A stretch of DNA of 64,000 bases from Amoeboaphelidium protococcarum X5 (Eukaryota; Fungi; Aphelidiomycota). Every line of letters begins with the position of its first letter. Within the stretch, counting starts at the first letter, position 1. The stretch covers positions 186,001-250,000 of the forward strand of contig JALDTO010000192.1 of NCBI GenBank assembly GCA_023515725.1, read 5' to 3'. The translations under genes were made by a program, and so were the position numbers. Positions 16,715-45,332 of the stretch are shown here, piece after piece. The notes beneath the pieces are model-generated. The model was given only the letters and a program-made list of their open reading frames with translations, was not told the origin of the DNA and searched no databases.

Positions 16715-16754
16715 AGATTGATTTTTTTTGTATCTATAAAAGTGTATACATCAT
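16715..16754 (+). repeat. Left copy of ~40-bp imperfect direct repeat bounding the integrase/protease insert
   Basis: agattgattttttttgtatctataaaagtgtatacatcat; matches 19524-19566. Confidence 0.8.
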
Positions 16755-16980
16755 ATATGCATGGTGATTTCAAACGTGTCAATGTTAATAGAGCCTCAAA
16801 GCAACAACTGACAACTTTAGCATTTTGAAACTGGATTCTTTTAGCCAAATAAATCAACACTGTGCGATGGGAGAGAAGACACTTCATTGGTAATGAATGA
16901 TTCAGTGCCCCATTTCCGTGCATCTATTCCTTCAAATAAATAATTTTTATCAGGAAAGATTATCTTTTTTGAAATATACC

Positions 16981-18004: not shown

Positions 18005-18053
18005 CGGATTTATTGACACCATTAAAACCAGTAGGAGAGGTATGCTATTAAAA

Positions 18054-19359: not shown

Positions 19360-19523
19360 TTCTGTTAGAATAAGCAAAACAGAATAGATAAAAGTCAATT
19401 AAATAGTATACGTGCCGTGTGGCTGAGCTCTATTGATCAGAGATCAAGAAACAAAGTGGCGCAGCAAATTTCTCCTTATCCGAGACGACGGTCAAGGTTA
19501 GCGACAGAACATAAAACCCAACA

Positions 19524-19566
19524 AGATTGATAGTTTTTTTGTATTTATAAAAAGTGTATGCATCAT
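19524..19566 (+). repeat. Right copy of ~40-bp imperfect direct repeat
   Basis: agattgatagtttttttgtatttataaaaagtgtatgcatcat; matches 16715-16754. Confidence 0.8.
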
Positions 19567-22762: not shown

Positions 22763-24118
22763 TCATTTGGATATCCTTTCAAGTTCCTGGCAATATCGCT
22801 GAAATTCTCCAGTTCCCTTTTTACACTCTTTAGTAAGTGCGCTGATGTATTACTCTTCCACTTGCTTTTCAAATTGTATCACTTGACCGGATGATCCGCC
22901 AGTATTAGTATTGCGATTAGCATCAGTTGATTATTATTACTTTGCTTGCATCCATGCCTGAGGAAAGTTATAAGGATTAACGTAGTATGGCACATTTCTC
23001 TACTATGTAAACAGCTTGTAATTGTACGCAGAAGATGGATGGAATGAATAGGATGGAGCCCCACCGCTACCGTATTAGCCAGAGGGAGACAGGACTGCAG
23101 AGTACATTGTTGATATTAAACCGTTCAATATCTACGCCACAATGACAATTATGAAAGGCAAAAACTGAATATATCTAAACCAGGAGGCAGCTGCAGCATT
23201 AGCTCGTTCCTCTTCATTATCATCAAGTGATGATTAACTACTTCCCCTCCTACGACCGCCTCTGTTCATACCACCATGATTTCCAAATGGATGATGATGC
23301 CTCTATCGAATGATCCTAGGCCTACCATCAAGACCAATAGTAACACCGGCACCACCAAATCCACCAGATGACATGAAAGGATTATCCATAGAAGATGTCA
23401 TACCGCCAAAGAACATGTTGAAGATATCTTCCGGGCTCATCTCTGGCACATATTCATCCTAACCGTAATGCGCATACCTGCCGCGAGTTCCACCAGCAGC
23501 TCCGAATGGGAATTGAGAACCGGCATTACTACTAAAAGGTGATGATTGTGAAGGACCACCGCGCTTTAAACCATCAACACCAAACTAATCATAAATCCTC
23601 CGTTTATCATCATTACTCAGCACTTGGAATGCAGTGCCAACTAATTTAAACGCCTCCGAAGCATTAGGCGCACCATTCTTATCAGGATGGACTTATAAGG
23701 CAATCTTGCGGTAAGATTTCTTGATCTGAGCCTCTGTCACTTGTGATGAAGATTTATCGAGTTGTAGTATTCCATAATAGTCATTCTTATTCTACAGGAT
23801 CCGCTGCACCACCGCGACATGCTCTTCTGTATAAGTTCGCTCTTACTCCGCCTAATTGCTTAAATCTTCATTGTTACTATTACTCCTACTCTATTCTCCA
23901 TTTGTTCGCTACTAGGAGTTATCGCCATTCAGAGTATCGCTTGATTAAGATTTCAATTTAGTCTCACATAGTCGCACCACCGAGTCCGCTTCATCCAACG
24001 AGGGATACAAAGACTATGATTTCTTGGCAAATTTTAACGCTCTAGCATAATCGCCATCTTTATAATATCCTTTAGCTATATCAATGCACTTTATAGCCTC
24101 GTCTTTATTAGACTCCAT
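22763..24118 (-). CDS. DnaJ subfamily B12/B14 (Hlj1-like) ER co-chaperone
   Basis: [16 protein letters not shown]-domain [28 protein letters not shown], a TM segment and a DUF1977-like tail. Confidence 0.9.
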
Positions 24119-24601
24119 CCCTCTCTATACAGTATTGTGATTCGATTAGCTTTACAGCAGTTAAATTGGAAAGAAGCGTTACAATTGGCGAAAGAGAAGA
24201 TTAACGGGCTCTAAAATTGCCAAAAGTTGATTATCACATTGCAGGGGGAAATTATGCTCCAGATGAACTGGTGCTCATCCACAGGATGAAAGCATGTCAA
24301 TATAAGTGATTATAAGGAAATCGCGGCGATCTTCTAAGAGCTATCTACGGCGATAAGTGAAGCTGATTGTTAAGGTGAGGATTAATTCAAAGCGTCAACT
24401 GGGTGAGTGTATGGATTTCTCGAAATATTAAAGCTATAGCTACGTACTACAGTATGAAATGTCGCGGAAATGCATGCATCAAACAAGCGTGGGCCGATTT
24501 GCATAAACACTTGTTTATATACTAGTTAGCGTAACGTATCGCGGTCGACGAAAATAATTACGGTGGTGACAAGCAGCTATTTGCAACGTGAAAAATGAAG
24601 A

Positions 24602-27600
24602 TGAAAGGTGAAAACAAGAGAGACAGCACTGTGTTGGTAGTAATTATTTTACTGATTGATTTTTTATTCATTGCTCTAGCACTGAACAGCGCTTTCGATT
24701 TATATTGTAGTACAGTAGTAGCCATGAAATGCGGCCAATGGATTCAGAATTGTCCAGAGAGATGAGGTGGAGGAGGTGGAGGAGGAGGAGCTCTTGTTAA
24801 ATGTGTTGACTAGATGGAGACTGACCATACCATTAGAAACTTTAAGAAATCATAACACAAAACTCCAGAGGGGACAATTCATGAATGTGATGAGAACCAC
24901 AGCAGCAAAGCAATTCAGACTACCAGTGTAGGGGGAAACTCTTGCCAGAGGACTCGATCAACTCTTGACTATTGACTACAGAGCAGATACGGGGGGCCTC
25001 GGCAACTTTCGAATGGAACTTCTATATATTCTATATTCTATGAGATGTGACTGCTGCGCCTCCAATGAGATGACTATATATACAAATGACATGAGACTAC
25101 GGAGGACGCAGAAAACTCTTGCAATGACGCCTATGATCTAGCTACGGCGCCATGTACAAAGGATGATGATGATGACATGCAGCCAAAGGAGCCTATGGAT
25201 GGGGACTACGGCACCAGTGGCATTGAGATGAGGAACTACTCTTGCAGACTACGCCTATGATCTAGCTACGGCGCATCTGCAAAGGATCATGATGATGATG
25301 TGAAGCCAAACGAGCCTATGACAATAAACTACGGCCCGATGGCAGTGGGATGAGGAACTACTCTTGCAAATGACGCCTTGATTGACAGACTACGACGCCA
25401 TTTGCAAACTATGACAAGCAGCCGCCAGAGGAGTCTAAGAATTTTCACTGCGACTCCAGCGGCAAATACACAAGACGAGATGACTCTATTCTATCCAACG
25501 CAACTAGCCAGTCCAACGAGAGAGAGAGATATATATATATATGTAGAGGCAGGACCGGCCAAGATGCGCACAGAGAGTGGATAGAACAGAGATAGAGAGA
25601 GGACAACCACAACACAGTATGCCTTGTATTGCAATTGTCCAGAGAGGGAGACTTACGGAGAGGAAACGGAGACAAAGACAGGTGCAGATTTTTAGCCTAG
25701 GACCATGATTGAAGTCCAGATGATCAATGAGATGAGGCAGCACCACATATTTTATAGTCTTGTCAGCTTCCACCAGCTCCAATATAATTTTACTTGGCAT
25801 TGGCATTACGAGAACAATGATTGAATTTTTTTTCATTTTCCTGCCAATGCCAAGGCGGTGCGCGGGTCAGGCATACCAGTTACTAGCTACCATTGCATTT
25901 GTAGTACCAACCAGGCCAAGCCAACCAGACGAAGATTACTTATGGACATTCAAAGAGTGAGAGAGAGAGAGAGTCCAGCGGTTGGCGAGGCAGAGTTGGC
26001 AGATGAATTATTATTATTATTATTATTTATGGCAATTAGCTATCTCAGAGACCCGCGCACCAGAAGATACCAGCTATAACCTATGACGGTTATAGCATTT
26101 TGATTATGAACCCAGCTCTTTGCTGGGCAGACTTTTCTTTACTGGCCATACCAGACCAACACCACCACCCCCTCTTTTCCAACTCCATGTGGGCCATCAT
26201 GGCCCACTCCCAGTCACCAAATCACCATCTTCACGGCCAAAGACGGCCAGGTCCAGCCCAAGATGACACTGGACAGACTTGTTCGCAGCCTTCTATACCA
26301 CGACGCCAAAGACCAATACCCACTGGCCAGCTGCAGGTCCAACAGAACGACAACACAACCTCTGGTGTCGTCGTGACACAAGCCAGCACTAATGGACCAG
26401 CACAAGCTCCTTCATCCAGAAAGGGACCGAGAGGAAAGAGACCGCCAGAGATACGACTTTGACTAGGCGAAGAGGCAGTAAACAAGCAGAGAACAATTAA
26501 TTTCTAGAAGCAAAGAGCAGAGGACTCCTTGCTGAGATCTAATAAGAACAGCCCAACAAAAATGAGGGCATTATTATAGAGAGCCAATCGCAGCCAACTA
26601 ACAGCTGCGAGGTTGACCAAGTTCTTTTTTGAAGCGCCAACAATTAGACGCCATGCTACCGAGAGCGTTCTATACTTTAAAGCCATATTTTCGGCTAATA
26701 ACCTGGACTTTGCAACCTCAATCCTCATAACGCCAACTAAATACTCACAAACTTAGAAGCTGATGGTCTGATAGCATGGAAACACAACCTCTGGTGCTTC
26801 CATAGCACAAGCCAGCACTACAGACCAGCACAAGCTCCTCCGACCAGCTTCTTGACCAGCGGACGAGACTCCCAGAAGTGAGATCTTTGACAAGGTAGTA
26901 GAGGTTCAATCAGGACTGTAATGACAACTTTTCATTTGATTTACTCATTTGCACAGAGCAGAGGACTCTGTGTTGCTTTTTTTATAATCACCTCATCCAT
27001 TAGTGCAAGGATGGGTGCTTTAGATATGACGACATCAATTCTTATTAAGTTAATATATAGGTGAATCACCACGTTCTTTTAAGGATTCTAGCAATATTTT
27101 AGGATACTTTAACTCCAGTATTACTGTTGGGCAGTAGACAGTTCAATGCTTATCGCCAGCACAATCCGCACTCATAAACGCAGCAGATGCAGTTTTTTCA
27201 TTACAACACAGACGTCATACAAGACAACAATGACAATTACATATCTTCAGGCGACTAACACGCAGAGAGAGATTCTATTCTATCTAGTACAGAGTAAGAG
27301 CCAGTCAGAGAAATAAACGATATGTGACTTTTTTCTCCAAATCGGTGTTAACAACAGGAATTAAAGAACCAGCATAACTTGAGTTATTGCGTAGAGTTCC
27401 ATGTTCAATAAGAAGGGGTGTATGGTCAGCAGACACACCAAGCAAAGTCTGATTATCCTTAGTAAAATAGCAGCGTTTTCAGCTTGTAAACAATGAGCCA
27501 GAGAGACATTTCCCAATTGAGCTTTATCAACCAGCAGCAAACCAGAAGACGATATCAATTGACTCTACAAGCAGTTGTAGTACTGCGGCTCAATGACCAG

Positions 27601-29062
27601 TCAGCAGTTTCAAGTCAATGACCATTCACAAAAGGACAGTAGTTCTCTGACGAATACAAGCATCAAATGAGACCATAGTTCAGGACTCACCAAGTTGGTA
27701 CTGCATATAGCATGAACCTTGTTAAAGAAAAGCAAACAACAACAATTACAACTTCACAGACACCCAAAACCTTGTGAGAGCAAAGCAAACACAGTCGACC
27801 CCAAAGTCATGTTCCGATATCACTAATAAAGAAGAGCGCAAAACCCATGGAGCCAGCCTCTTCTATTGCTTTTGTATAGTAAACAGCTACAACCAATTAT
27901 GAATTGAAGACACAGCCAGTACCTTGTCATCGAAGCATTCTTGATAAGTCAAAGTAGCATGAACCTACACACATAGAACTACATAAAATGAATAAAAGAG
28001 CTAAATCTGTTAAATATATACATACCGGATTAGAGACAATGACCATGAGAGTAGCTTTGAGAGGTCAGCCACAGATGGATAAAGAGAGAGAGAGATGAGC
28101 CTTGACAGTATCTTGTGACTAAGAGAAGTTCCAGCAAAGAGGACAGCGATTAAACACAAGCTCGACATCATGGGCCATAGTAGAGGAGCAGCATTCTTCA
28201 CCAGTAAGGATCCGGAGGATTGTCCAGAGACCATCATCATAGAGCTGGAACGAGCGAGCAGGAGACGGATTGTTTCAGGTGCAGAGTAGAGGAGACAGAC
28301 AGCCAAACTGAGCAGATAGCAAGCGAGCACCAGAGCCATCACTCAAGCAAGTAGCTAGGACACCATACTGGCATATCGGATGAGATAAACGCATAGCGAA
28401 CATATGAGTGTAATAATCGATTGTTATCATAAGAGAAGAAGAGAGTGTGATATGGGACAGTGGGAATGTTTGATTCTTCCCCCACACTTTGTTTCAGATC
28501 TGAAACGTGGCTTGAGTGAAACGGGGACCACCAAAAGGCAACCGGGTCAGTTCTTGATCAATTTCTTTGGGAATAAGCTCATCTGCCGTTTCAGAAAACG
28601 ATCTATCGATTGGTACTAATATTATATGTACTCGAGTTTGGTGAGTTATATTAAGTAAGCTATAGGATTGAGTGGTTGTCCGGATTAGGAAGCTCGCGCG
28701 CGCTCCGTCGCTGAAACGAAACCGGTCTGGACCGAGGGCCGATATCGAACAATGCGGCCGCCAGAGTAAAGGAAAGTGCACAATATAAAACTGGTAGTCA
28801 GTGAGGACTTAGTACTGTATTATCGCTGATATCAATGGTATATCTGTAACTTTTTATTCCCAAACATTGGTATTCCTGTTAGTTTGAAATGTAATCTAAT
28901 AGGCCAACCTTCACCTTCCAAAAACTATTTTCAGGAAGCCAGACCGCACCCTCTTGTACACATACTTGTATTTTTACTAACCTTATAGCAGTTTTATATA
29001 GTTTTTATCTGTCACTTGTATTATTCACAGCTTCTCCCAGCTGTATTATGCAACTATGAACT
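24602..29062 (+). repeat. Left arm of ~4.4-kb inverted repeat
   Basis: Reverse complement aligns along its length to 39108-43566; mirrored ORFs in the supplied track (e.g. 25378-25584+ = 42586-42792-). Ends approximate. Confidence 0.95.
25095..25410 (+). repeat. ~125-bp degenerate tandem repeat (~2.5 units) inside the IR arm, mirrored at ~42760-43075
   Basis: Recurring actcttgca..acgcctatgatctagctacggcgc..caaaggat(gat)n..gccaaa.gagcctatg units. Confidence 0.75.
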
Positions 29063-29179
29063 ACTTGCTGTTCATGATTTGAATGAGTGGTGAAAATACA
29101 CTACAGTATAGGAGATGTAGATGGAGAAGACGCATAAACGCATGATATGAAATATACCAACACTGAATGTATTATACTT

Positions 29180-30259
29180 TCACTGCATACTTTAAGTTGC
29201 GCCAAATTCTTCCTCTTACTATTTATCGGATAAAGACTATTAAACATCTGTATCAGTGATAGAAGGGGGATTCTCTAGAGAGTAAGAGGTAAATCCACAT
29301 CCAGTGGCGCGATCGATTTGCATTTACAGGTCCAACATCTAGTCTTTATTATCGATACTGAGCGGCTGGAATGTAACCAACTTGAAATCTTCTATGAGTC
29401 CAACTAGAGATTCATTCAGTCGATGGTAAGAAGAATCTTTAGTCTGTTTTAGATGATCCAAAAGATATGATGTATCCCCAACCTGTGTATAATAGTCCAC
29501 ATCAAATGCCAGGTCGTCTTTAAACGTGCTGATCAAATCGAACTTCGACATTACGTTGATGAACGGGAATTCTAAGCACAGCATCATCCTGAGAGATAGC
29601 AAAACGGATGATATATATTTCCCCGAGTCGGCACAGTGTGTGACATCAGTCAGACTGACAATGCACACCTGTAGATCCATCTCTCTTTATAGCCATTATA
29701 TCAACATTGGAGTGGACATGTTGGTATCGGTAAATAATTCAACTTGTCCCGGAAAATCAATTAAAAAATGTACTCTTGCATCTTGGTCATCATCTTCTTC
29801 TTCTTCCGCTGTGTCATTCTTACTACTTTTACTATCATTATTATGAGAGTTTGCATGCGTATTAATATCGCCAGTTGGAGCAGTCGCGCTATGCTAGTGC
29901 TTGTCGTCTTCAATAGCGGAGGCTGCAGATTCCAACTACTGCATCAACCACTCTTTATTTTCATACAAGAAATCCATACAGTACAGCAGACTACCATTAG
30001 ATCCGAGCTAATACTTATCCATCACATCCTCTAGCGTTATCAAATCTCTAATATCAACATCGTACATGATATCCTAGGACTCGCCATTTTATTGATCAAT
30101 GGGTTGATTAACAAGTTCATTGGCAGGATCCAAATTTACAAGAATTACGCGTCTCTTTTTATATTACTTGGGTAGAGCTTCCATAAACTATCTGACGCCT
30201 TGACAGTATGTGCTCTTGCCACTACCAGCAGTCCCTATAACAATTTGCGCGTATGGCAT
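29180..30259 (-). CDS. GPN2: GPN-loop GTPase 2 (divergent)
   Basis: MPYAQIVIGTAGSGKSTYC, VNLDPANE, LIDFPGQVELFT, LEFPFINVMSKFDL. Confidence 0.88.
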
Positions 30260-30787
30260 GATTATCTTCAATGATTACTTCTTTACTAAGGTGCTATTCG
30301 AGCGATGGAGATGAAAATGAGAAGAGAAAGGGGCCATTTCGATGCTCTTTGATGTTATCAATACTCTTTTGAGTCTTATAACTAAATTGAATATTTTTTT
30401 TAAATATATTATTGATAATAATCTTAGATAAAACTGCGCTTCTGTGACTATTAGTTGCAATCGCATAAACTATTATAGTTAAACCAGTGTTACGACTTCC
30501 GTCATCAAATTCAACGATCTCACGATTTGTAATAGAAAGATTGCAATTATAACTACCGTGTTACATAGTCTCACTATATAAGTCATTATAAAAGCCTATA
30601 GAATTATCTGAGATTTTTAATTATTGCAGTGGAGAAAAGCTCTGATATAACGGTAAGCCATGTGGGTGTTTTTGTTGAAGTTGAAACGTTGATCCGCGAT
30701 GCGATGACCAATCCATCATTTGTCACTTTTTAATGCCCCTTTAGTTCTTGTGCATGTTAGTTTTATGCACACTCAACTTGCCAGCCA

Positions 30788-31534
30788 ATGCCACATAAGA
30801 ATAGTATTTTGTATTAACAGCTTAAGGACAGCAGCCTGAAAACTGGAGATCTGGTGTTGTTTAGTGACAGTTGGTTCATCACATCGCGAATAACGCGTTT
30901 CACAACAAGATCAAGGTGGACTCACATTGCAATGATTATTAGGTATCCGCTTAATATTCCATTTTACGAGCGAGATTTATACATTTGGGAAATAAGCAAT
31001 GGTGTATGGACCCACCAAGATCTAATATCTGGAGAGAGTAAGACTCGAGGGTCGCGTGTCATTTTACTAACTGATAAGTTTCAAGACTTTCCGCAATGGC
31101 ATTTCAACTATGTGGCCTTTGAGCAATTGCAAAACGTACATATTCCATTAATGACTGTGTTTGAGTATGAGAGATATGAATTGCAGATACATGCATAGAT
31201 TATGCCCGTTTTGGAGCAATGGTCGACGCTAAACTTTAAACACGATACGTGGACGTTTATCAAGGCTGTCATTTCTCAGCGTCCATGGCTATAAATGGAC
31301 CATATTGGACATCGTCGCGTAAACTTGGAACATGAACAATTGTTCTGTTCAGAAGCTCTGACTATCTTACTGCAGCATATTGGTCTGGTAGATGCACGCG
31401 TTAAGCCTCAACGAATCGTCCCAGGAGATTTCGCTCACGTATTCTAAACGATATCTCACGGAATCGGTAAGTAACTCCCTTTACTCAATGGTTGGTATTA
31501 CCGCCCCTTCATGATTCTTGACAAATGGAAATGA
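30788..31534 (+). CDS. Permuted papain-like (NlpC/P60, YiiX/YaeF-type) amidase
   Basis: LKTGDLVLF, RSRWTHIAMI (His), LFCSE (Cys), IVPGDF, with His before Cys as in permuted NlpC/P60 enzymes. Confidence 0.75.
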
Positions 31535-31612
31535 AATATACAATCTAGTAAGTAAAGATATCAACGTTTATCATCATCATCACCATTTCCATCACAATCA
31601 TACACAATAGCA

Positions 31613-32155
31613 TCACATCAACTTGTGTCCAATGGAATCATACTTGAACAGATTCAGCTTCTTGTCGGCATTGACCAGAGTCTGCAGATGAAACGGACGG
31701 TCGATTCTTCGATGTTTCTCCGGCTTCGTAATGGCCGCGTAATCTTTATCAAAACCGACAGACTTTCGGCTCAACTCCTCGTGGATCATCGTCAGTTTCG
31801 TGGAGATGAATTGAACGTTTGTTTCACAATCTTGCACTGATCGCTTACACTCATTCACCTTCTGCTCGTAGCTTCCCATAGCCATATTGAGATTCTGTAC
31901 AAATGTTGATAGACCATCTGCAGCGTAGCTTCTTACTTTCATATCCACCTAGTCGTACTGATCCTTGTTCATAGGCGGCTATGCGTACAAGCTTCGACAG
32001 TACTAGGCAATCTGTGCCAGTTGCACACTTGTGTTTTTGAGCATTTCAATATGATCCTGCATTGTTTTCTGAGCCTCCACAGGTGCTCCAGGTATCATCT
32101 ACTACTATTAATATTGTACTTGTTATTGCTAATTATTGTAATTATTATAATCCAT
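31613..32155 (-). CDS. ABI: Abl-interactor (ABI) WAVE-complex subunit, short form
   Basis: LAQIAQYCRSLY, RSYAADGLS, IHEELSRKSVG, YDSIGH match the Abi N-terminal/HHR region; ends at TGA 31613-31615. Confidence 0.72.
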
Positions 32156-32373
32156 ATTAGTCTGTCTAAATAAAGTTCTCGTTCTATCGAATGCAATCGT
32201 TAGTGAGGCAATAAATATCGCAACTTTGGTAAAGAATGATGAAACTGAAACTAAGAAAGAGCCCCAGAGAACGAGGAGCGGATTCCTTAAGCTGTCAAAA
32301 GTCAAGTGATTTTCGTTAATTAAATAATAGTGATATAAACTTCAATTTATATTCAAATGCTTATTGGAGTAAA

Positions 32374-34320
32374 TCAACGTCTATCAGTTTTACCGTTCTT
32401 ACGCTTGCCTGCAAACAGATGCTTCGGCATTGAGGTGAGGATTACACGATCAGCCTCACCAGCCTTGGCCAACATGTTATTTCTTCTCTCGTTCAACTTC
32501 TTGATGTTTGTGACTTCAGACTTCTGTTTGTTATCCCTCAGTCCCATAACGCTACGATCACGCATAGGAATGGATCTGAACTTGGACATCGATCTGGCGA
32601 TTGAGACCTCGCGACCACCCATACGCACGTCTCCATCTTCATCTTGTTGCTGCGTGATACTGCGAGTTCTCTTTCTACCACGAGCACTCTCTTCAGCTTC
32701 CACAGTGTCTAATCCAAGCGGCTGCAATTGCTTACCAATTTCGCTTGCAGAACGCAATCTAGCTCTAGCTTTCAGACCAATCTTGGATGTCTGCTTGGTG
32801 GTTTTCATTCTATGCTGCACAACCATCATCTTTCTCTTCTCCTTGATCTTATTGGCTAATGTACGGGCATTGATAGCAGTTGGATCAGTAACTTCTCCTT
32901 CTACAGCATAATGTCCAGCATCTACCAGTCCCTCCTCCTCGCGCTCCAGAGCCTCCAACTTGGCAGCAATCTCAGGATCAATAAAGTCTGCCACATTATG
33001 ACCATCCATAATCTCGGGAATAATATCATGCTTCCACTCATCGCTAGCCAGGATATATTTCTTCTTCAAATCAATGTTGTAAACACCAGCACCGCCATTC
33101 TCAACTTCAATATCGCGCTCGGTGCGCACCTTCTCCGGAACTGTTACATCCTATCTAACTTTGTGAGCCATCTAAGGTGGAATGAAAGGCTGTCGCTCAG
33201 TGTCATCACGCTCCACAGGCATTGCAACATGGATCCTATCTAAAATGTCTCCAACCTTGTTGTTGGACTGACGCAGCTTACTCTCAACGCGCGCAGCCAG
33301 CAACTTATCACAGGCCAGCTACTTTGCTTCCATCAGACCAGTCTCATTGAAGCAGCTCACTTCAATATATTCAACTCCGCTACTCTTTATGAGCTGATCC
33401 ACTTCAAGCTTCTCATCTTCAGACAGATCTGCCAGCGTTCTCTTATCGCTCTTGTTAAAGACCAACACCAAAGGCTTGTTGGCGAAAAGTGGCTAAATCG
33501 ACTTGAACAATGATGCCTGCAGTTTGATAGAATAGCCACACTCCTCGGACAGATCCATAAAGTACAAGATACAAGATCTCAAATGAGCCAAAGCAGTGAT
33601 GGAAAGCATCTCAATAGTGTTACGCTCTTCCAACGGATGATCCAAAATTCCCGGAGTGTCAATCACCTACCAACGGAGATACTTGTAATCCATATGACCA
33701 ACGAATAGACTCTTGGTGGTGAAAGCGTAAGGTTGCACATCAACTTCAGCACGCGTCAATTTGTTGATAAAGCTACTCTTGCCACAATTTGGATAACCAC
33801 AAATGAGCAACGTACGCGTGTTAGGATCGATGGCTGGTAGACGCGCCAAATGCTATCTAACCTGCTCCAAGTACGCGAGAGTCTCCTTCTATTTCTTCAT
33901 GATGGTGGCCATTCTACCCAAAGCTGCGCGCTTCAACTGCTTACATCTGTACAGAGAATCACCAAACTTCAACAAGCGAACATAATCTCTACCTACACCA
34001 CTGATCAAATTCTTGGCAGCAAAGATGTGACCCAAGGCGATCTTGTAATGATCGCGGTCATACAGCACATTGATCAGATCAGAGTAGAATGGATGCACAT
34101 CATCTAACTTGGGGAAATCAGTCAAAATCTGCTCCAATTTCTCTTCAAAACTCTGCTGCGTATACTTCACCTTGCGCATGTAGAATGCTCTAATACGCGA
34201 GATCTGATAAGACTTGTGCACCACAGTCGGCGTCTTTCTCATGGTCTTAGACAGCACAATATCAATGAATTCATTAGCGGTAGGCACCGTCTGTATTCCT
34301 TTCAAATTATACACAGACAT
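32374..34320 (-). CDS. NOG1: Nucleolar GTP-binding protein 1
   Basis: [54 protein letters not shown]. Confidence 0.98.
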
Positions 34321-34571
34321 TTTTAATTTCCAATTTTTGTATGCGTGTAAAAATGACAATTAAAAGTTCCAAGTATTGTTATGATGAAGAGGAAACGAAA
34401 AAATTAACTTTGCGCAATTTTCAAATCGCCACACTGATTTCGGCTATGCTTGATACTAAGTGTTGCAGATGCTTAACTATCGCTGTATTCAAATTTCAAG
34501 GAAAATGGATTGCAAACTGAAAATTACATCTATAGATATATTAAAGCAAATAGTAATATAAAATATGAGAG

Positions 34572-35927
34572 TCATAGCTAATCAAGCAATTTACGCTATC
34601 GCTTCCGTTTTAACTTGCACTTGACGCAGTTACACTGACTTTCCGTGTCGGTCTCACTCTCAGTGGATGAAACGCTTAAAGCGGCTCCCTTCATCACGGA
34701 TTAGGACGAGGATGATGACGAAGAGCTAGAGTCACTGTCAGAGGAGGAAGAGGAGTAAAGATTAGGAACATATTTCAACTCTTCTATAGAATTGATTACC
34801 ACAGAGAATTGATTACACCTAGGATCACAGTCAGGATTCTTGGAGATATTCATAATAGCTTGTTTGAGCTTGGCGGCAAATTTAGGACGTGCATTACGCG
34901 TCTTCAACCAAGAGTATTCAGCGTTGAGAGGATGTGAGAGATTCTGAGTAACTGCAATCGAAAAGTCTAAATTTATAACAACATGATGCCACCCGGGAGG
35001 AACATAAACACACTAACCACGTTCTTGAATAAAGTCAACAATGCGCAAAGACTTTTACTACTCCGGAGTAAGACTCAGTATTTTGTTGTACACCGTGTGG
35101 AACCATGTAATACCTTCATTATCAAGATGGGTTGCATATTGAGAATAGTCATCACCAGGCTAACGAGATAAGAGCTCTTTACGCGTCTTTGGAGGAAACA
35201 AAATCCATCTCTTACGACCTTGGATTAATGCATTCCAAGCAGATGTCCCGAGTGGATCTTGATGAAGATTAGTACCAGACCTCGCAGGACCAATAACAAT
35301 CCAGCGATGAGGTGGCCGTTTACTGCGGACCTCTTCCAGATCGAATAGATCTTACTAAAAGAACTCGGGCACTCTAAAATCATCAACCAGTTTACTATTA
35401 GTAACATTTAACTTCAACTTTGATCTAGTCGTTGAAGAAGACTCTTAAGTAGTATTGCTCAATTTTTAACGCCCAAAAGAAGAGTCAAATATGTATAGAG
35501 GCGAATCTTCCTGGGGTGCCAAGTGCTTACAGTATCTCAAGTAGTCTTTCATAGACAATCGCACAGGTCGGCCACTGTCATCCTCACCAACGCGAAACAT
35601 CAGATTTTGACAGGTGGGAGATGATTTAAAGAATTGCTTGTTCCATTTACGCATAGCTGGCCACCAGTTCATTATATTATCAATAAGTACAGGCTGTGAG
35701 TTGACGATATACTTCCTCTCAAATTTTTTGAGTGATATTGCAGAGCCATCAATACGAGTGATATCGTGAGCATAAGCACTTTTGTCAGGCAGAGGACGAC
35801 TGGCATAATCATTTCGTGTCCAACCATTCAAGATATTCAATGAAGAGCGGCATTTCAATTTAGCCTCATTCACCCACGATATCCACCTCTTATTCTATCT
35901 CTTTCTCTTCCTCTTTATTCCAGCCAT
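34572..35927 (-). CDS. JMJD6: JmjC arginine demethylase / lysyl hydroxylase JMJD6
   Basis: [54 protein letters not shown]-type motif, AVTQN, poly-Ser tail. Confidence 0.9.
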
Positions 35928-36095
35928 ATTCCTTGATAATTTATTCATTCAGTTTTCTCACTTTTTACTGACAGTTGTTATGAACGCGTTACTTCACACC
36001 ATCGATCAAGGGGAACTAAGGGCGGTCGAGCTTTAGTGTTTCATCTCTTTCTTCACCACTTTATAAATTTAACTAGACGTAATTACCAGTTTATC

Positions 36096-38935
36096 ATGTA
36101 TTTTGCGACTGACACTATTAGAATATATAAGCATATTCCGTGGTAGGATATCAGTTAGCGGTAGTGGTCTGTCAGCTCTAGCAGAAATTACTTTTGTATA
36201 CTCTAATCAAATGGCTAGCTTGAACTGTATGTGTCTAAGGTATGATAAATTACTCAGAGTTCTCTCTTATGATTTTGAATCTATCTGTGTAGAATTTGAT
36301 TAAAGTATGTTCAATATAGCTGGATTCTGTAATTGTCTAGCAAGTGAGTAAGATTATATGGAGTCATGATGATAACTGTATACTATTACTTTGCGATTAA
36401 TCCGCTACTCTGTTATGGCTGAGCCCAGAAAACAATGATGATGATTAATATGGTGGTGGCATGAATAGATACCAGTTTGCTTTCTAAACAGATGAGACTA
36501 TAGATGCAGGATTTAATATTGCCTCTGTAAAGTTGGCGTTAGCTGGTCAATACAGCTTGAGTCATACCATATAAGATGCAGCGTTCCTGTCTCCTGAATG
36601 TGTACTTGTCTTTCTGAAAGACTCTCAGTCGATACTTAAATTATCTACATCAGATGGAGTTATTAGTGAAGCTAGCAAGGACTTATTTCAGGACTTGATG
36701 TATCATACTGATAATACCGGCAGCCATCTGCTATCTGTACATGTTGATACTCTTATGGATATTGCCGTACTATGCCTGGATGATGATTCAATGTTCTTAT
36801 ACAAGGTGTCTTCATTGCTATCACCTGCTGATAAAGATGCATAATATAGAGAGTTTGCTCATCTATCATGTCGCGATGTTGATGATGTGGACGTTGTATT
36901 GAAAATTAAATCTATTGCTTTTAATGCTCCTTTTAGGTTGCTAACTGTTCTTACTTCCGATGGCCTGCTTATTAATTATAGAGTCTCTGAGTAATTGAAG
37001 ACGAAATAAGTCAATAAGATCAAATGTCCGAGTTATGAATCTGGTGGATCAACTAGCGCATTTAGTTGGACACACGATGGATATGCTATGGCGCTGAGTT
37101 ATGCGGCAGGTGGATTTGCTGTTTACTCTGTCTTTGGCAAATGTATATTCAGTACGATTACGAATAGAGGTGAGTAATTTACAATTAGTAATGGTAATAA
37201 TAATGAAAATTAACCAGTTATCATGAACAACGGTAATGCATTATTTTGGGATTTCATGAGCTACTCTTTGAATATAGTATCTCGCGCTGACAGTCAGGTG
37301 GTGTAAATGCAATTTGGTAAGAATTCATTGACCACATGCAATGTTAAAGATAACATGAGAAATCCATTTCTAGTATCTGCTGATAGTTTACATCTATATA
37401 ATCATTCAGATGTTGATGTTAAGTAGAATGTTGAGCCTGTTCATCCTGTAAGTGTATACAAAGTGGTGCTTATTCCGTAACAATATATTCAGTTGCAAGG
37501 TCCAGTGCGTTATGCATGTGCTAATAATGATGGCAGTCGAATCGCTGTGGCCGGACGCAGAGGCTTTGCTATATATCAAAAGTCTTCTAATAAGTGGAAG
37601 TTATTCGTAAATGAAGAATGCGAGAATAGATATGAAGTATAAAGCGGCCTTATTTGGTTTAAGCATTACTTTATAGCTGGTGTTTTTGATCATATTTAGA
37701 AGCAGAAAGCATTGATAGTGGTGGACTCAAGATAATCACTTGATCCATCAAAAGTTCTGATTTCAGTTCCTCTGTAGAGTCAACTTATTAAGCTGAACAT
37801 TCTCTATAATCATTTGCTAGTGGTTGATGATGAACTCTAAGTGATGCATTATGTGCTTGAAGATGCTGCGGCTAGTGGTAATTCCTTCCTGTAGATGCGA
37901 TTATTATCAGAGTAATCTTTAAATACTTTATCAACTTCACCGCTGTGCTTATAGTTTATAGATTGGTTTCTGCCTATCACGGATTATTCGAATCTCAATG
38001 AGCGTATTAAAGATGCTCCTTATATTGTCCTTTCTGGAGGTGATTTATCACTCGTTAATCCACCATACCCCCAGTCTATCGATAGCAGTTAAAGCCCTTA
38101 GTCTTGTTTGATTGCGTAAAAGATTGAATTTTGTTGGCCGTTCTATCCGCGCAAACCAATTGGGACCATGTTTAACGCTTTATGGGCTTATGACGGGCAC
38201 AGAGTTAGGATTTGGATTAATTTGCTTCTATAGACATCTGCGGACTTTAGATGGGCTCCTCGAAAGCCATTAGAATTGAAGCTCGACTTTTACCCGTTTG
38301 GCGTTCTGTTCCATAAAGGAATCATTGTTGGCGTAGAATAGTCTTTGACGATGTTGTCTAACGCAGGTTCTAATACTGGTGAGAATTTGCATTCACTTTA
38401 ATTCCAGTCGCATGGAAAGACATTTCTATTTATTCACTATTTTGTCAAGAGTCTTTTGGATTAGTAATTCTATCAGGAAGCTCTGGAATTTGGTGCCTTC
38501 TTTCAAGACTTTGAGTATTTCGGTCACTCGATGGAGATAATGCTTCATAAAGTGGTGGCACAGGAGTTTTAAATGTTCTCAGATAACCAAGTTGTATCTC
38601 CATCAACCAAGAATATGCTTCCTCGGTTGATCTAGTATCTCTAGAATTTCTAGCAGTATCGCAAAATTGTTGTGAATTGCGCAAGGAAGACAGAGTTTAC
38701 GATGTGGGATTACCTCTTCTCTGTGGTGGGTAGTCCTCTCTAGTTGTTCTAACAATGTTTAGAAGCTGAAGAGGTGCAGGTGGCCGCATCTTGTCTGATT
38801 ATATTGCAAACTCAATAGCCAACGGCCGTCACCAAAGAACTGTAAATATCTCTCCTCAAAAAAGCTCTCAATTCCAATGAACTGGAACTTGTCGGTGATA
38901 TTGTGCGGTACTTGACTAGAGTAAATGAGCTTTGA
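36096..38935 (+). CDS. RIC1: RIC1 (Rab6/Ypt6 GEF subunit); intron 36240-36292
   Basis: MYF start, IAVAGRRGF, KWKLFVNE, LDFYP, EYFGHSMEIMLH, VVNCARKTEFTMWDYLF. Confidence 0.9.
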
Positions 38936-39107
38936 TTTTCACTGTGATACTCTGACGTCCATGGTGGTTTACTTGAAAGCTAAGATGTTGCAAGTGTAGT
39001 ATATTTATTATTGTATTGTACATTTATCACATTTTACAGATACTCTATTGAACCTCTCACATCCAGCATATCTACTTGTTGCAACCAGACATATGACACA
39101 TCAGATC

Positions 39108-42100
39108 CAGATCATAGTTGTAAAATACAGCTGGGAGAAGTTGTGAATAATACACGTGACAGATACAAACTATATAATACTGCTATAACGTTAGTAAAAC
39201 TACAAGTATGTGTACAAGAGTGTGCGGTCTGGCTTCCTGAAAATAGTTTTTGGAAGGTGAAGGTTGGCCTATTAGAATATATTTCATGCTTACAGGAATG
39301 ATAGTGTTTGGGAATAAAAAGTTACAGATGTACCATTAATATCAGCGATATTACAGTAACAAGTCCTTACTGACTACCAGTTTTTTATTGTGCACTTTCC
39401 TTTACTTTGGCGGCCGCATTGTTCGATATCGGCCCTCGGTCTAGAACGGGCTCGTTTCCGCGACGGAGCGCGCGCGAGCTTCCTAATCCGGACAACCACT
39501 CACTCCTATAGCCTAGCCAATAGAACTCACCAAGCTGGAGTGCATATAATATTAGTACCAATCGATAGATCGTTTTCTGAAACGGCAGATGAGCTTATTC
39601 CCAAAGAAATTGATCAAGAACTGACCCGGTTGCCATTTGGTGGTCCCCGTTTCACTCAAGCCACGTTTCAGATCTGAAACAAAGTGTGGGGGAAGAATCA
39701 AACATTCCCACTGTCCCATATCACACTCTCTTCTTCTCTTATGATAACAATCGATTATTACACTCTTATGTTCGCTATGCGTTTATCTCATCCGATATGC
39801 CAGTATAGTGTCCTATCTACTTGCTTGAGTGATGGTTCTGGTGCTCGCTTGCTATCTGCTCAGTTTGGCTGTCTGTCTCCTCTCTCTGCACCTGAAACAA
39901 TCCGTCTCCTGCTCGCTCGTTCCAGCTCTATGATGATGGTCTCTGGACAATCCTCCGGATCCTTACTGGTGAAGAATGCTGCTCCTCTACTGTTGTCCAT
40001 GATGTCGAGCTGGTGTTTAATCGCTGTCCTCTTTGCTTGTCCCTCTCTCAATCACAAGATACTGTCAAGGCTCATCTCTCTCTCTTTCCATCTGTGAATG
40101 ACCTCTCAAAGCTACTCTCATGGTCATTGTCTCTAATCCGGTATGTATATATTTAACAGATTAAGCTCGTTTTATTCATTTTATGAAGTTCTATGTGTGT
40201 AGGTTCATGCTACTTTGACTTATCAAGAATGCTTCGATGACAAGGTTCTGGCTGTGTCTCCAACTCATAATTGGTTGTAGCTGTTTTACTATACAAAAGC
40301 AATAGAAGAGGCTGGCTCCATGGGTTTTGCGCTCTTCTTTATTAGTGATATCGCAACATGACTTTGGTGTCGACTGTGTTTGCTTTGCTCTCACAAGGCT
40401 TTGGGTGTCTGTGAAGTTGTAATTGTTGTTGTTTGCTTTTCTTTAACAAGGTTCATGCTATATACAGTACCAACTTGGTGAGTCCTGAACTATGGTCTCA
40501 TTTGATGCTCGTATTCGGCAGAGAACTACTGCCCTTTTGTGAATGGTCATTGACTTGAAACTGCTTACTGGTCATTGAGCCGCAGTACTACAACTGCTTG
40601 TAGAGTCAATTGATATCGTCTTCTGGTTTGCTGCTGGTTGATAAAGCTCAATTGGGAAATGTCTCTATGGCTCATTGTTTACAAGCTGAAATCGCTGCTA
40701 TTTTACTAAGGATAATCAGACTTTGCTTGGTCTGTCTGCTGACCATACACCCCTTCTTATTGAACATGGAACTCTACGCAATAACTCAAGTTATGCTGGT
40801 TCTTTAATTCCTGTTGTTAACACCGATTTGGAGAAAAAAGTCTCATATCGTTTATCTCTCTGACTGACTCTTACTCTATACTAGATAGAATAGAATCTCT
40901 CTCTGCGTCTTAGTCGCCTGAAGACTTGTAATTGTCATTATTGTCTTGTATGACGTCTGTGTTGTAATGAAAAAACTACATCTGCTGCCTCTCATGAGTG
41001 CGTATTGTGCTGGCGATAAGCATTGAACTGTCTAATGCCCAACAGTAATACTGGAGTTAAAGTATCCTAAAATATTGCTAGAATCCTTAAAAGAACGTGG
41101 TGATTCACCTATATATTAACTTAATAAGAATTGATGTCGTCATATCTAAAGCACCCATCCTTACACTAATGGATGAGGTGATTATAAAAAAAGCAACACA
41201 GAGTCCTCTGCTCTGTGCAAATGAGTAAATTAAATGAAAAGTTGTCTTTACAGTCCTGATTGAACCTCTACTACCTTGTCAATGATCTCACTTCTGGGAG
41301 TCTCGTCCGCTGGTCAAGAAGCTGGTCGGAGGAGCTTGTGCTGGTCTGTAGTGCTGGCTTGTGCTATGGAAGCACCAGAGGTTGTGTTTCCATGCTATCA
41401 GACCATCAGCTTCTAAGTTTGTGAGTATTAAGTTGGCGTTATAGGGATTGAGGTTGCAAAGTCCAGGATATTAGCCGAAAATATGGCTTTAAAAGTATAG
41501 AAAGATCCTGGTAGCATGACGTCTAATTGTTGGCGCTTCAAAAAAGAATTTGGTCAGTCTCGCCGCTGTTAGTTGGCTGCGATTGGCTCTCTATAAAAAT
41601 GCCCTCATTTTGTTGGGCTGTTCTTATTAGATCTCAGCAAGGAGTCCTCTGCTCTTTGCTTCTAGAAATTGATTGTTCTCTGCTTGTTTGCTGCCTCTTC
41701 GCCTAGTCAAAGTTGTATCTCTGGCGGTCTCTTTCCTCTCGGTCTCTGGCTGGATGAAGGAGCTTGTGCTGGTCCTCTAGTGCTGGCTTGTGTCACGACG
41801 ACACCAGAGGTTGTGTTGTCGTTCTATTGGACCTGCAGCTGGCCAGTGGGTATTGGTCTTTGGCGTCGTGGTATAGAAGGCTGCGAACAAGTCTGTCCAG
41901 TGTCATCTTGGGCTGGACCTGGCCGTCTTTGGCCGTGAAGAAGGTGATTTGGTGATTGGGAGTGGGCCATCATGGCCCACATGGAGTTGGAAAAGAGGGG
42001 GTGGTGGTGTTGGTCTGGTATGGCCAGTATAGAAAAGTCTGCCCAGCAAAAAGCTGGGTTCATAATCAATTTGCTATAACCGTCATAGGTTATAGCTGGT

Positions 42101-43566
42101 ATCATCTGGTGCGCGGGTCTCTGAGATAGCTAATTGCCATAAATAATAATAATAATAATTCATCTGCCAACTCTGCCTCGCCAACCGCTGGACTCTCTCT
42201 CTCTCTCTCTCACTCTTTGAATGTTCATAAGTAATCTTCGTCTGGTTGGCTTGGCCGAGGTGGAACAATAAATGCAATGGTAGCTAGTAACTGGTATGCC
42301 TGACCCGCGCACCGCCTTGGCATTGGCAGGAAAATGAAAAAAAATTCAATCATTGTTCTCGTAATGCCAATGCCAAGTAAAATTATATTGGAGCTGGTGG
42401 AAGCTGACAAGACTATAAAATATGTGGTGCTGCCTCATCTCATTGATCATCTGGACTTCAATCATGGTCCTAGGCTAAAAATCTGCACCTGTCTTTGTCT
42501 CCGTTTCCTCTCCGTAAGTCTCCCTCTCTGGACAATTGCAATACAAGGCATACTGTGTTGTGGTTGTCCTCTCTCTATCTCTGTTCTATCCACTCTCTGT
42601 GCGCATCTTGGCCGGTCCTGCCTCTACATATATATATATATCTCTCTCTCTCGTTGGACTGGCTAGTTGCGTTGGATAGAATAGAGTCATCTCGTCTTGT
42701 GTATTTGCCGCTGGAGTCGCAGTGAAAATTCTTAGACTCCTCTGGCGGCTGCTTGTCATAGTTTGCAAATGGCGTCGTAGTCTGTCAATCAAGGCGTCAT
42801 TTGCAAGAGTAGTTCCTCATCCCACTGCCATCGGGCCGTAGTTTATTGTCATAGGCTCGTTTGGCTTCACATCATCATCATGATCCTTTGCAGATGCGCC
42901 GTAGCTAGATCATAGGCGTAGTCTGCAAGAGTAGTTCCTCATCTCAATGCCACTGGTGCCGTAGTCCCCATCCATAGGCTCCTTTGGCTGCATGTCATCA
43001 TCATCATCCTTTGTACATGGCGCCGTAGCTAGATCATAGGCGTCATTGCAAGAGTTTTCTGCGTCCTCCGTAGTCTCATGTCATTTGTATATATAGTCAT
43101 CTCATTGGAGGCGCAGCAGTCACATCTCATAGAATATAGAATATATAGAAGTTCCATTCGAAAGTTGCCGAGGCCCCCCGTATCTGCTCTGTAGTCAATA
43201 GTCAAGAGTTGATCGAGTCCTCTGGCAAGAGTTTCCCCCTACACTGGTAGTCTGAATTGCTTTGCTGCTGTGGTTCTCATCACATTCATGAATTGTCCCC
43301 TCTGGAGTTTTGTGTTATGATTTCTTAAAGTTTCTAATGGTATGGTCAGTCTCCATCTAGTCAACACATTTAACAAGAGCTCCTCCTCCTCCACCTCCTC
43401 CACCTCATCTCTCTGGACAATTCTGAATCCATTGGCCGCATTTCATGGCTACTACTGTACTACAATATAAATCGAAAGTGCTGTTCAGTGCTAGAGCAAT
43501 GAATAAAAAATCAATCAGTAAAATAATTACTACCAACACAGTGATGTCTCTTGTTTTCACTTTTCA
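39108..43566 (-). repeat. Right arm of ~4.4-kb inverted repeat
   Basis: Reverse complement of 24602-29062; ends approximate. Confidence 0.95.
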
Positions 43567-43726
43567 CTTTCAAGTCGCAGTTAATCGCGACTTCATTCCA
43601 ATCTAACCACAGTGAAGCGTTTGCGCGGCGATTTCGCGCTAATTCCCTCTTTATCACTCTTTGATCAGTCTTGCACATACCACCATTTTATGAGCTAGAG
43701 TCACGTTAAAGGTGTTGCAGGTAACG

Positions 43727-45262
43727 ATGGAAAGAAAGCGAAAGTAGTAGAATGATGATTCCGCGTTGTAAGCGGATAATGTAAAGAAGAGCAAGCTGAC
43801 TGAGCTAAGCGATGGGAATAAGCAATTTTAATCATAATCTAAAGCCTCTAATTCCATCAAGGACAGACTGGCAGATGTAAAGAAGCGTCTAGCTGAACGC
43901 AAATAGTAGAGCTCACAGTTAAAAGATTCTACTGGCGATTTAGGCAGAGGTGATTCCCATTAAACCATCCTCAATGTTCCCATCCATCCTATAATCGCTG
44001 GTACCGCTGCTCCATCCAAGAAAGATGAATCTGGTAGTAAATAGACTGCAACTTCTCAGCAGAAGAATCCCTACGTGACAAAGAATGGTCCTAAAGATCA
44101 GAGATTGAATGCCAAGCTCAAGTTTATAAGGAGAGGTAAATTGAGTAAAAAGGCTGATTATGTTCGTTAGACGTTATAGCTGGAAATGGTTAATAATCAG
44201 TCAGAGTTGGAGCGATTGCAGTCACATTCACAAGACTTTGAATTGGATCTTGTGGGAGATGACGCGTATGACCAAGTCCCTTCTTTAACTGGATTTGATA
44301 CTGTTGCTGTCTCTGAGGATTTAGAATCTGATCAATATGTCGAGTGGTGGGATAGTTAAATTTTGTCTTTTCCGCGATATGATTTGGAAAGTATAAAGTA
44401 TGACTAGATTACATCTCTCATTCAGCATCCAGTGTAACTGAGACCTTTCCGAGATGATGAATTCGGTTCAGATAACGCTTAGATATAAAAGATCCATCTG
44501 ACTAGGAAGGAGATGCGTAAAGCTAGACGTCTTCGTCGAATAGACGCAGAAAAGGAGAGGCAGTTGAAAGTACAGCTAGGACTTCTACCTCCCGTGCCGT
44601 AAAAGTTGAAAATGTCCAGCGTGATGAGGTTGAACGCGGCTGGTCAATTGTTCGTTCAAGGTGAACCTACGGCGATTGAATTGCAAGTGATGTAGCAGGT
44701 GAAGGAGAGACTGGAGAAGCATCAGCGTATGAATGAGGAGCGTAAATTGACGCAAGACCAGAGGAGATTGAAGTTGGTGTATAAGAACTCTGATGACACC
44801 AACCACGGGGCAGTGATTAATGTATTTGTCATTTTTAAGGATCTATCGCTACATCCTAAGAGTAGATTTAAAATCAAAGCTAGTGCGTAAGATTACCATC
44901 TCAGCGGACTGTGTCTTCAATGTGATGGATATGCTCTTCTTGTGGTTGAGGGAGGCTAGCGGACTTTATCAAAATTTAGACATGTCATTCTCAATCGCTT
45001 AAACTGGAATATAGACTAATCATCGAAAGATAGTGACTAACTCAATACTAGGAAGGCGGAAGTGAATGGCTTGGATGAAAGTACAGCATAATCAACTCTA
45101 ATGCTATTCGAAGGAGAAGTAGCCTGTCCTCATTTTGACAGATTCTAAATGCTGGAGTGTTACTTACCATCAGAGGTGAAGTCTCATCTTGGCGAGTATT
45201 ACCGGAATTTCTGGACTCTATCACAGAATATCAAATATATATCTCAGCACTAAATCGAATGA
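43727..45262 (+). CDS. PRP3: U4/U6 snRNP protein Prp3
   Basis: VEWWD, ITSLIQHPV, LTRKEMRKARRLRR, LGLLPP, RLEKHQRMNEERKLT, VVEGG. Confidence 0.92.
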
Positions 45263-45332
45263 ACTTAACCCAACTAAGCGTACTATGTATAAGATGGAGA
45301 ATATATTTATCAACTCATAAATCACAAAGTTA

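Follow-up and report, generated by a model that had tools for sequence, protein, structure and literature searches.

Introduction

In the aphelid Amoeboaphelidium protococcarum, a parasite of algae, two inverted repeats of about 4.4 kb enclose a 10-kb block of genes, and the locus raises the question of whether this block flips between its arms, by what mechanism, and whether a flip has any consequence for the genes on either side. The locus lies in a 64-kb stretch of contig JALDTO010000192.1 (C192), here called the window, whose coordinates are used unless another contig is named; the strain is designated by its locus tags, MIR68, and the homeologous contig is C235. An earlier note on this DNA had described the segment as a candidate for inversion and had compared it with the programmed flip-flop of mating-type loci in yeasts. 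According to our results, the 10-kb block is cleanly inverted between two strains, with both outer flanks conserved. It is likely that the locus is a natural flip/flop region in which homologous recombination between arms that are genes for a noncoding RNA (ncRNA) inverts the block, and that this process is neutral and unregulated.

Inverted arms and their assembly

A repeat search of the window paired collinear inverted segments at 24619-29062 and 39109-43551 that are 91-99% complementary, and a MAFFT alignment of five copies placed the arm ends at 24602/43566 and 29062/39109, with an overall arm identity of 97.0%. The arms that the earlier note had drawn at 24602-29062 and 39108-43566 were thus borne out. 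The arms are 99% identical over the outer 1.35 kb and ~94-98% identical in their inner parts, and the spacer between them measures 10,046 bp. The inner 140 bp of the repeat (28920-29062) form the end of the 3' untranslated region (3'UTR) of GPN2, and at the other arm that of RIC1. Contigs built from the reads of three independent runs contain both inner junctions, arm-GPN2 and arm-RIC1, which shows that the duplication did not arise during assembly.

The unplaced contigs C123 (903 bp), C288 (2085 bp), and C31 (2030 bp) are 100% identical to arm segments of C192 or C235, a sign that they are collapsed repeat nodes and a warning about perfect identities elsewhere in the assembly. The two arms of C235 are mutually 100% identical. 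In view of the unplaced contigs, assembler collapse may in part account for this identity and for the identity of the outermost 1.1 kb in the C192 arms, and the step in identity along the C192 arms perhaps also owes something to it.

Orientation of the block in two strains

The second strain, MP228 (assembly GCA_023515745.1), was reached through the small spacer gene and RIC1. In MIR68, C192 and C235 alike have the order DnaJ-arm-GPN2...RIC1-arm-PRP3. The locus is present in MP228 in two haplotypes, H3 and H4, and the window haplotype is called H1. In H4, one contig of 2.17 Mb (L024, L025) spans the whole locus with the order DnaJ-arm-RIC1...GPN2-arm-PRP3, or in full transporter, MFS, Dus, DnaJ, arm, RIC1, JmjC, NOG1, 161-aa gene, papain-like gene, GPN2, arm, PRP3, WD40. 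By BLAST, positions 1-17513 of L024 correspond to the window from 42093 back to 24596 and then forward over 39109-46569, and positions 1-17466 of L025 correspond to 26122-43572 and then backward from 29062 to 19537. In H3 (L023, L026), GPN2-arm-PRP3 is found on contig 256 and RIC1-arm-DnaJ on contig 11, and these junctions are the same as in H4. The gene-order comparison thus gave C235 the orientation of the window and MP228 the opposite one. The proposal that the block can invert without breaking a gene therefore holds in nature, both orientations being present among four haplotypes of two strains.

Four unique segments, namely the two flanks and the two spacer parts, were used to assess how the four haplotypes are related. 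A grouping of C192 with H3 and of C235 with H4 is supported by 192 informative sites, compared with 63 for a grouping by orientation and 55 for the third grouping. C192 and H3 are 1.9-2.9% apart, yet they have opposite orientations, and the favoured tree needs two orientation changes. One inversion is secure, and the second is probable, depending on the orientation of C235 as assembled.

The divergences themselves are uneven. The two MP228 haplotypes are ~4-5% apart and both are 2-5% from C192, and C235 is 7.5-9% from all three. The two "homeologs" differ in age between one strain and the other, and the strains therefore carry different sub-genome combinations at the locus.

A further rearrangement was observed in H3, where a base-precise reciprocal exchange (AACGCGTT / ACTTCAC) lies at window 35990/35991 (L023:6105, L026:11611), in the intergenic gap between JMJD6 and RIC1. 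The exchange joins an ArfGAP-PDEase-VDE block (C179:463931-470028) to JMJD6, and a truncated histidine-kinase gene (C215:4079 to ~11697) to RIC1, and this accounts for the 1,500-aa HisKA+RIC1 "fusion" in the annotation (MP228_003704). The exchange may be a real translocation, or else the result of a chimeric join.

Position of the crossover

The crossover that separates H1 from H3 was mapped at the sites where the two H3 arms differ. The DnaJ-side arm of H1 tracks the DnaJ-side arm of H3 to 28993 and the GPN2-side arm from 29006, and the reciprocal arm switches between 29015 and 29048. Two blocks of sites, X (28867-29015) and Y (29048-29060), occur in all four combinations. The breakpoints are inside the repeats, and the exchange is reciprocal. 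The crossover is 15-70 bp from the inner edge of the 4,460-bp repeat, and consequently the arms kept their outer flanks. The predicted exchange of the inner halves of the arms between a DnaJ and a PRP3 context was not part of the mapped event.

The position of the crossover also bears on whether the orientation difference is an assembly artefact, produced by a wrong path through a repeat that was not spanned. Such an artefact would be in line with the collapsed repeat contigs of the MIR68 assembly that are identical to arm segments, with the perfectly identical arms of C235, and with the splitting of H3 by the second rearrangement. However, the arms are 90.6% identical in the crossover interval, that is, about one base in ten differs at 28994-29047, so the exchange is not an assembler mis-join, which would need a tract where the two arms of one haplotype are identical, at 24879-25748 in H1 or 25748-26900 in H3. 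In addition, three different contigs of MP228 contain the flipped junctions, the one of 2.17 Mb covers the locus completely, and the MP228 arms differ from each other by 2-8% and are hence unambiguous. An artefact is therefore a very unlikely explanation for the two orientations.

Concerted evolution of the arms

The arms evolve in concert, with mosaic conversion tracts. Diverged copies of the arm, here called A, B, and C, are also present on each of two further homeologous contigs, C136 and C244. The flanks are positionally orthologous between homeologs, over the whole locus in C192 and C235 and at copies A and B of C136 and C244. The copies themselves cluster by chromosome with 100/100 support, as seen for copies A, B, and C of C136, copies A and B of C244, the arms of C235, and the arms of MP228-H4. 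The arms are fine mosaics of each other, and tracts of 100% arm-to-arm identity (0.3-1.2 kb) are haplotype-specific, lying at 24879-25748 in H1, 25748-26900 in H3, and 27520-27814 in H4. The evidence from the copies of C136 and C244 and from MP228 is unaffected by the possible assembler collapse in C192 and C235.

Genetic code and gene content

When TGA is taken as the only stop, the window outside the arms is filled with open frames of 400-1036 codons; the list of open reading frames (ORFs) made with the standard code contains no frame longer than 271 codons. In this genome TAA and TAG are sense codons and TGA is the sole stop. Standard-code ORF lists are therefore misleading for gene finding, and the frames of the window were called anew under this code. 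For proteins that contain in-frame TAA or TAG, the searches used stop-free pieces. One such piece of a spacer gene is 99% identical to the hypothetical protein MP228_008832 [Amoeboaphelidium protococcarum].

The gene content given earlier for the spacer was confirmed for GPN2, NOG1, and the JmjC gene by Pfam searches of the stop-free pieces, and for RIC1 through the MP228 annotation, which also supports the identities of DnaJ, PRP3, Dus, and MFS. The features of the locus and of the arm family are listed in Table 1.

Table 1. Features of the invertible locus and of related arm copies (window coordinates unless a contig is given).
Feature	Position	Strand	Basis
Left arm, inverted repeat, 4,461 bp; one ncRNA gene copy, transcribed towards DnaJ	24602..29062	-	Repeat search and alignment
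Right arm, inverted repeat, 4,459 bp; second ncRNA gene copy, transcribed towards PRP3	39108..43566	+	Repeat search and alignment, mirror mapping
Invertible 10-kb block	29063..39107	.	Frames delimited by TGA
Reciprocal crossover interval separating H1 from its sister H3; 3'UTR end of GPN2	28994..29047	.	Four-gamete pattern
Mirror crossover interval, right arm	39124-39177	.	Mirror mapping
Left ncRNA, ~4.0 kb, unspliced, polyadenylated	24634..28680	-	3' end at 24634; 5' end approximate (28600-28700)
Right-copy ncRNA	39491..43536	+	By symmetry (mirror mapping); reads of both arms fall together
AATAAA signal, 29 nt upstream of the poly(A) site	24663..24668	-	Inside the conserved 3' block of the family
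Conserved 3' block, including a small hairpin	24633-24700	.	Family comparison
Best-conserved family block, near the RNA 5' end; ~94% across paralogues that are otherwise ~63-70% alike	28494..28625	-	
DnaJ, left outer flank; across the arm from GPN2 in MIR68 and from RIC1 in MP228	22766..24274	-	
GPN2	29183-30715	-	Open frame; Pfam ATP_bind_1
Papain-like gene	30416-31531	+	Open frame
161-aa gene	31616-32341	-	Open frame
NOG1	32377-34488	-	Open frame; Pfam NOGCT
JmjC gene (JMJD6)	34575-35948	-	Open frame; Pfam JmjC/Cupin_8
RIC1	36224-38932	+	Open frame; MP228 annotation
PRP3, right outer flank; across the arm from RIC1 in MIR68 and from GPN2 in MP228	43694..45259	+	
2.8-kb cassette	16754-19537		Pfam on four standard-code ORFs: no integrase, weak Trypsin_2 (E = 0.004)
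Second sub-family on C136, first copy	C136:187400-192100	+	
Second sub-family on C136, second copy	C136:225563-229783	-	
Second sub-family on C136, third copy	C136:310641-314856	-	
Second sub-family on C244, first copy	C244:58694-63246	+	
Second sub-family on C244, second copy	C244:97344-101407	-	
Second sub-family on C244, third copy	C244:242025-246119	+	
Single recent arm copy, 94-98% identical to the window arms	C264:2219775-2228234 (island)		

The ncRNA gene of the arms

Each arm is a gene for a ~4.0-kb unspliced polyadenylated ncRNA, which starts at ~28600-28700 near the inner end and is transcribed outward. Contigs of run X6 terminate in poly(T) just before 24634 on the plus strand, which corresponds to the poly(A) tail of a minus-strand RNA. 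The depth of X6 is 240-840 across the arm versus 43-109 in the flanking genes, and it drops to 3.7 at 28676-28874, a dip that is not seen in the DNA runs X1 and X9. From the poly(A) ends and the depth dip we infer that X6 is an RNA run, and by year and sample structure it would fit the dual RNA-seq study of Graesiella infected with A. protococcarum (PMC8657485). In the environmental metatranscriptome X15, four of the five contigs fall in the arm. No splice joints were seen in the read-derived contigs over the arm, and the MP228 annotation calls genes in the arm on the same strand as the arm RNA.

A protein gene in the arm was considered and ruled out. The arms are not filled with TGA-delimited frames of 400-1036 codons as the remainder of the window is. 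Of the 35 arm indels between homeologs, no more than 5 are multiples of 3, and the 434 arm substitutions are flat over the three phases; in the same homeolog comparison five spacer genes show a strong excess of substitutions at third positions. The three frames of the transcribed strand have equal amino-acid identity in every copy comparison, translated searches with the arm match in all frames on both strands, and the long TGA-free frames that do exist in the arm shift between copies. The best-conserved block (28494-28625) is peptide-like in appearance; it contains no Met-initiated frame, has no Pfam match, and shows no covariation. The earlier statement that ~9 kb of the locus lacks any recognisable gene thus stands as far as protein genes are concerned and fails in that the arms are transcribed ncRNA genes.

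A small nucleolar RNA (snoRNA) cluster or another known RNA was likewise ruled out. Except for a chance hit resembling a microRNA, Rfam had no match to the arm, whether at gathering thresholds or with E values up to 5, and no compensatory changes or covariation were seen on the transcribed strand. A metagenome scan for the conserved arm motif also gave no match. The block 28494-28625 contains a palindrome, GTTTCAGATCTGAAAC, and repeated CTGAAACG on both strands, and CTGAAACG has 7 matches in the window versus 1.5 expected.

Three other observations concern these sequences. Two more copies of CTGAAACG, 15 bp apart, lie at 8672-8694 on the minus strand, distant from the arms; judging from the motif, this pair may be another site for the same putative binding factor. 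A 123-nt tandem repeat of 2.2 copies is located at 25115-25382 and 42788-43055, in the 3' third of the arm RNA, and this region is TGA-free in two or three frames in all copies, yet it is without coding constraint. In one X6 contig a plus-strand poly(A) run begins after 24639, at a distance of 5 bp from the poly(A) site of the minus strand, which suggests a short convergent transcript from the upstream region of DnaJ or PRP3, back to back with the arm RNA.

The arm family and the question of a mobile origin

The arm was found to belong to a family of 11 copies at four loci in the 23.6-Mb genome, which include the C192 pair, the C235 pair, a single copy on C264, and the three diverged copies on each of C136 and C244. 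Homology across the family extends from 24633 to ~28750, with sharp peaks at 24633-24700 and 28494-28625. The copies on C136 and C244 make up a second sub-family that is 63-82% identical to the window arms in the aligned parts, and on each of these contigs two of them form an outward-facing inverted pair around a 34-kb block. In this second pair, copies A and B are collinear and have the same orientation in both homeologs. The third copy, C, and no less than 2 kb of its flank are inverted between the homeologs. The idea that the second pair had itself inverted from one homeolog to the other was considered and rejected, since A and B are collinear and the inversion of copy C together with its flanks means that the breakpoint is not at the repeat. 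A centromere, or a repeat of the dg/dh type, was also set aside; the housekeeping genes of the spacer are expressed, and a single contig has three copies inside 130 kb.

The number of copies at once raises the possibility that a mobile repeat family inserted twice to give the arms and that the enclosed block is incidental. The C264 copy could be taken as a sign of recent movement, because the homeolog has no counterpart of the nest of dispersed repeats in which it lies. However, the ends of this copy are imprecise, including 193 bp of PRP3-side flank and missing the inner 100 bp. Together with a 510-bp piece from elsewhere, it is enclosed by a dispersed repeat of ~2 kb; on C146, C233, C162, and C211 this repeat is contiguous, and the whole 8.5-kb island is absent from the homeolog C154. 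Given its imprecise ends and a repeat nest that the homeolog does not have, the C264 copy looks like host DNA captured by a mobile element and not like a product of transposition.

The arms themselves offer little to a mobile-element interpretation. As the earlier note had found for transposases, terminal inverted repeats, and target-site duplications, none of these is present in the arm; terminal direct repeats, LTR or Helitron ends, coding capacity, a poly(A) tail at the DNA level, and an autonomous partner element were likewise not found. With no termini, no target duplication, and no coding capacity, a transposon origin of the arms is unlikely. Moreover, both arms are at identical positions in all four haplotypes, and the copies include their own conserved promoter region and hence are not retrocopies. 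Taken together, an origin of the locus from two chance insertions is highly improbable.

Mechanism and the possibility of a programmed switch

A simple history probably accounts for the locus. An ancestral inverted duplication would have put two outward-transcribed copies of the ~4-kb ncRNA gene on either side of six housekeeping genes, and the two copies would since have kept exchanging sequence through homologous recombination. Most of these exchanges would be gene conversions, which hold the arms alike, and occasional crossovers, presumably at a low rate, would invert the 10-kb block. At least one inversion, and probably two, separate the four known A. protococcarum haplotypes. Because each arm is a whole RNA gene and the crossover is inside the repeat, a flip changes no gene and no promoter-gene pairing, and the regulatory effect of flipping that had been suggested for the locus is not supported. 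Most likely, then, the flip is neutral, arising as a side effect of the homogenisation of the arms, and it does not act as a regulated switch.

Several points weigh against this interpretation. The sole mapped crossover falls within 70 bp of the repeat edge, in the least identical part of the repeat, which has a probability of ~1.6% under uniform placement; this edge position is odd for ordinary homologous recombination. Both haplotypes share one orientation in each strain, which would arise by chance in about 1 in 4 to 8 cases, and the concordance could hint at a trans-acting cause. The orientations were read from two public assemblies. The arms of C235 are 100% identical and possibly collapsed, which makes the orientation of this haplotype, and with it the second inversion, less certain. 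Finally, the RNA nature of X6 is deduced from the poly(A) ends and the depth dip.

The first two of these points speak for a programmed, reversible switch, in which the block would flip on a signal through the action of a trans-acting factor or through a break induced at a preferred site close to each arm's inner edge. Parallels for such a switch would be found in site-specific invertases (FLP/FRT, Hin, or Cre type) and in the mating-type loci of Ogataea and Komagataella, which switch by flip/flop. The homeologs of one strain share their orientation while sister haplotypes of different strains differ, the only mappable crossover lies in a 55-bp interval at the inner edge, and the same RNA-gene family forms a second outward-facing inverted pair. 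A sexual cycle is not known in aphelids, and this too may be counted on the side of a switch.

However, no HMG, homeodomain, alpha-box, or recombinase families are present in the Pfam lists of the genes in or beside the block, as the earlier note had said of mating-type and recombinase genes in general, and on this ground its analogy with programmed mating-type switching is not sustained. The 161-aa and 200-aa products have no Pfam hit. Pfam found no integrase domain in the nearby 2.8-kb cassette, which is missing from contig 254 of MP228 and is hence an insertion polymorphism. A 6-bp palindrome (ACAGCT..AGCTGT) does occur in the 55-bp crossover interval, only one event being mapped there; in C235 the palindrome is not conserved. 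The homeologs do not differ in the orientation of the second inverted pair, the concordance within strains is based on four haplotypes only, and the flip alters no promoter-gene link. In addition, a region of Saccharomyces chromosome XIV shows the same pattern and is not programmed (PMC9731477). A programmed switch is therefore unlikely.

A more specific form of this idea, that a break or a recombinase acting at the last ~70 bp of the arms (28994-29047, 39124-39177) sets both homeologs alike in each strain as a controlled switch of aphelid cell state, is quite unlikely. If it were true, the outward-facing RNA genes would be the recombination or chromatin platform of a cell-state switch, and a switching system would exist in a lineage without a known sexual cycle, on an RNA family that also brackets a second block of 34 kb. 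We thus retain homologous recombination between the two ncRNA genes, without regulation, as the probable cause of the inversion.

Comparison with known systems

The closest analogue is the flip/flop region of Saccharomyces chromosome XIV, whose architecture and behaviour are nearly identical. That region of 24 kb contains 15 genes between 4-kb inverted repeats, which consist of expressed genes of a duplicating family (PMC9731477), and its arms are homogenised within strains, while the region has been repeatedly re-inverted and is stable in the laboratory (Salzberg et al. 2022, PMC9731477). In both cases a block of ordinary genes (some 10-24 kb) lies between inverted repeats of ~4 kb; the repeats are expressed genes of a fast-evolving, duplicating family, and the arms are homogenised within strains. 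In the yeast the orientation changes more than once on the strain tree, and in the aphelid a second change is probable. In neither case is a recombinase involved or a regulatory consequence known. The two differ in that the arms are an ncRNA gene in the aphelid and two sporulation protein genes in the yeast, and in that the aphelid block has 6 genes in 10 kb compared with 15 genes in 24 kb. Furthermore, the aphelid has a duplicated (homeologous) genome, and recurrence is judged from four haplotypes in the aphelid and from a population sample in the yeast.

The mating-type flip/flop of Ogataea polymorpha and Komagataella phaffii (PMC5720833, PMC6692504) also involves kilobase inverted repeats and inversion by homologous recombination, and the invertible block is of comparable size, being 19 kb long in O. 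polymorpha (PMC5720833, PMC6692504). In contrast to these loci, the ends of the aphelid block are without MAT genes, the flip changes no visible expression context, and no silencing centromere or telomere is known beside the locus. Similarities also exist with human polymorphic inversions that arise by non-allelic homologous recombination between inverted segmental duplications, in recurrence, in the concerted evolution of the arms through gene conversion, and in breakpoints that fall inside the repeats (PMC3961182, PMC6748972). The aphelid case differs in its compact, microbial genome, in arms that are a defined RNA gene family, and in the sampling of two strains.

Plastid inverted repeats offer another parallel. 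Their arms contain highly expressed RNA genes, conversion keeps the arms alike, and recombination flips the single-copy region; the plastid genome belongs to a multicopy organelle, and equimolar isomers are present in every cell. The aphelid locus, by comparison, is nuclear, with one orientation per assembly. The features specific to this locus relative to known flip/flop cases are the RNA-gene arm, the aphelid host, and the base-level map of the crossover. Our literature search, which did not extend to the primary genome paper (doi 10.1016/j.cub.2022.08.071), found no paper on the locus or on the RNA family in aphelids.

Biological significance

In the lineage that is sister to Fungi, the locus provides a sequence-resolved flip of a nuclear gene block between inverted repeats, and the crossover is narrowed to 55 bp. 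It shows that the architecture known from chromosome XIV, in which expressed and homogenising gene copies bracket a block that can be re-inverted, is not confined to yeasts. The arms also bring to light a family of ~4-kb polyadenylated ncRNAs in a very compact genome, at positions where the current annotation has hypothetical proteins. The orientation of the block is a ready strain marker. An inversion suppresses local recombination in heterozygotes, and this is relevant to the interpretation of the hybrid or duplicated genome of A. protococcarum.

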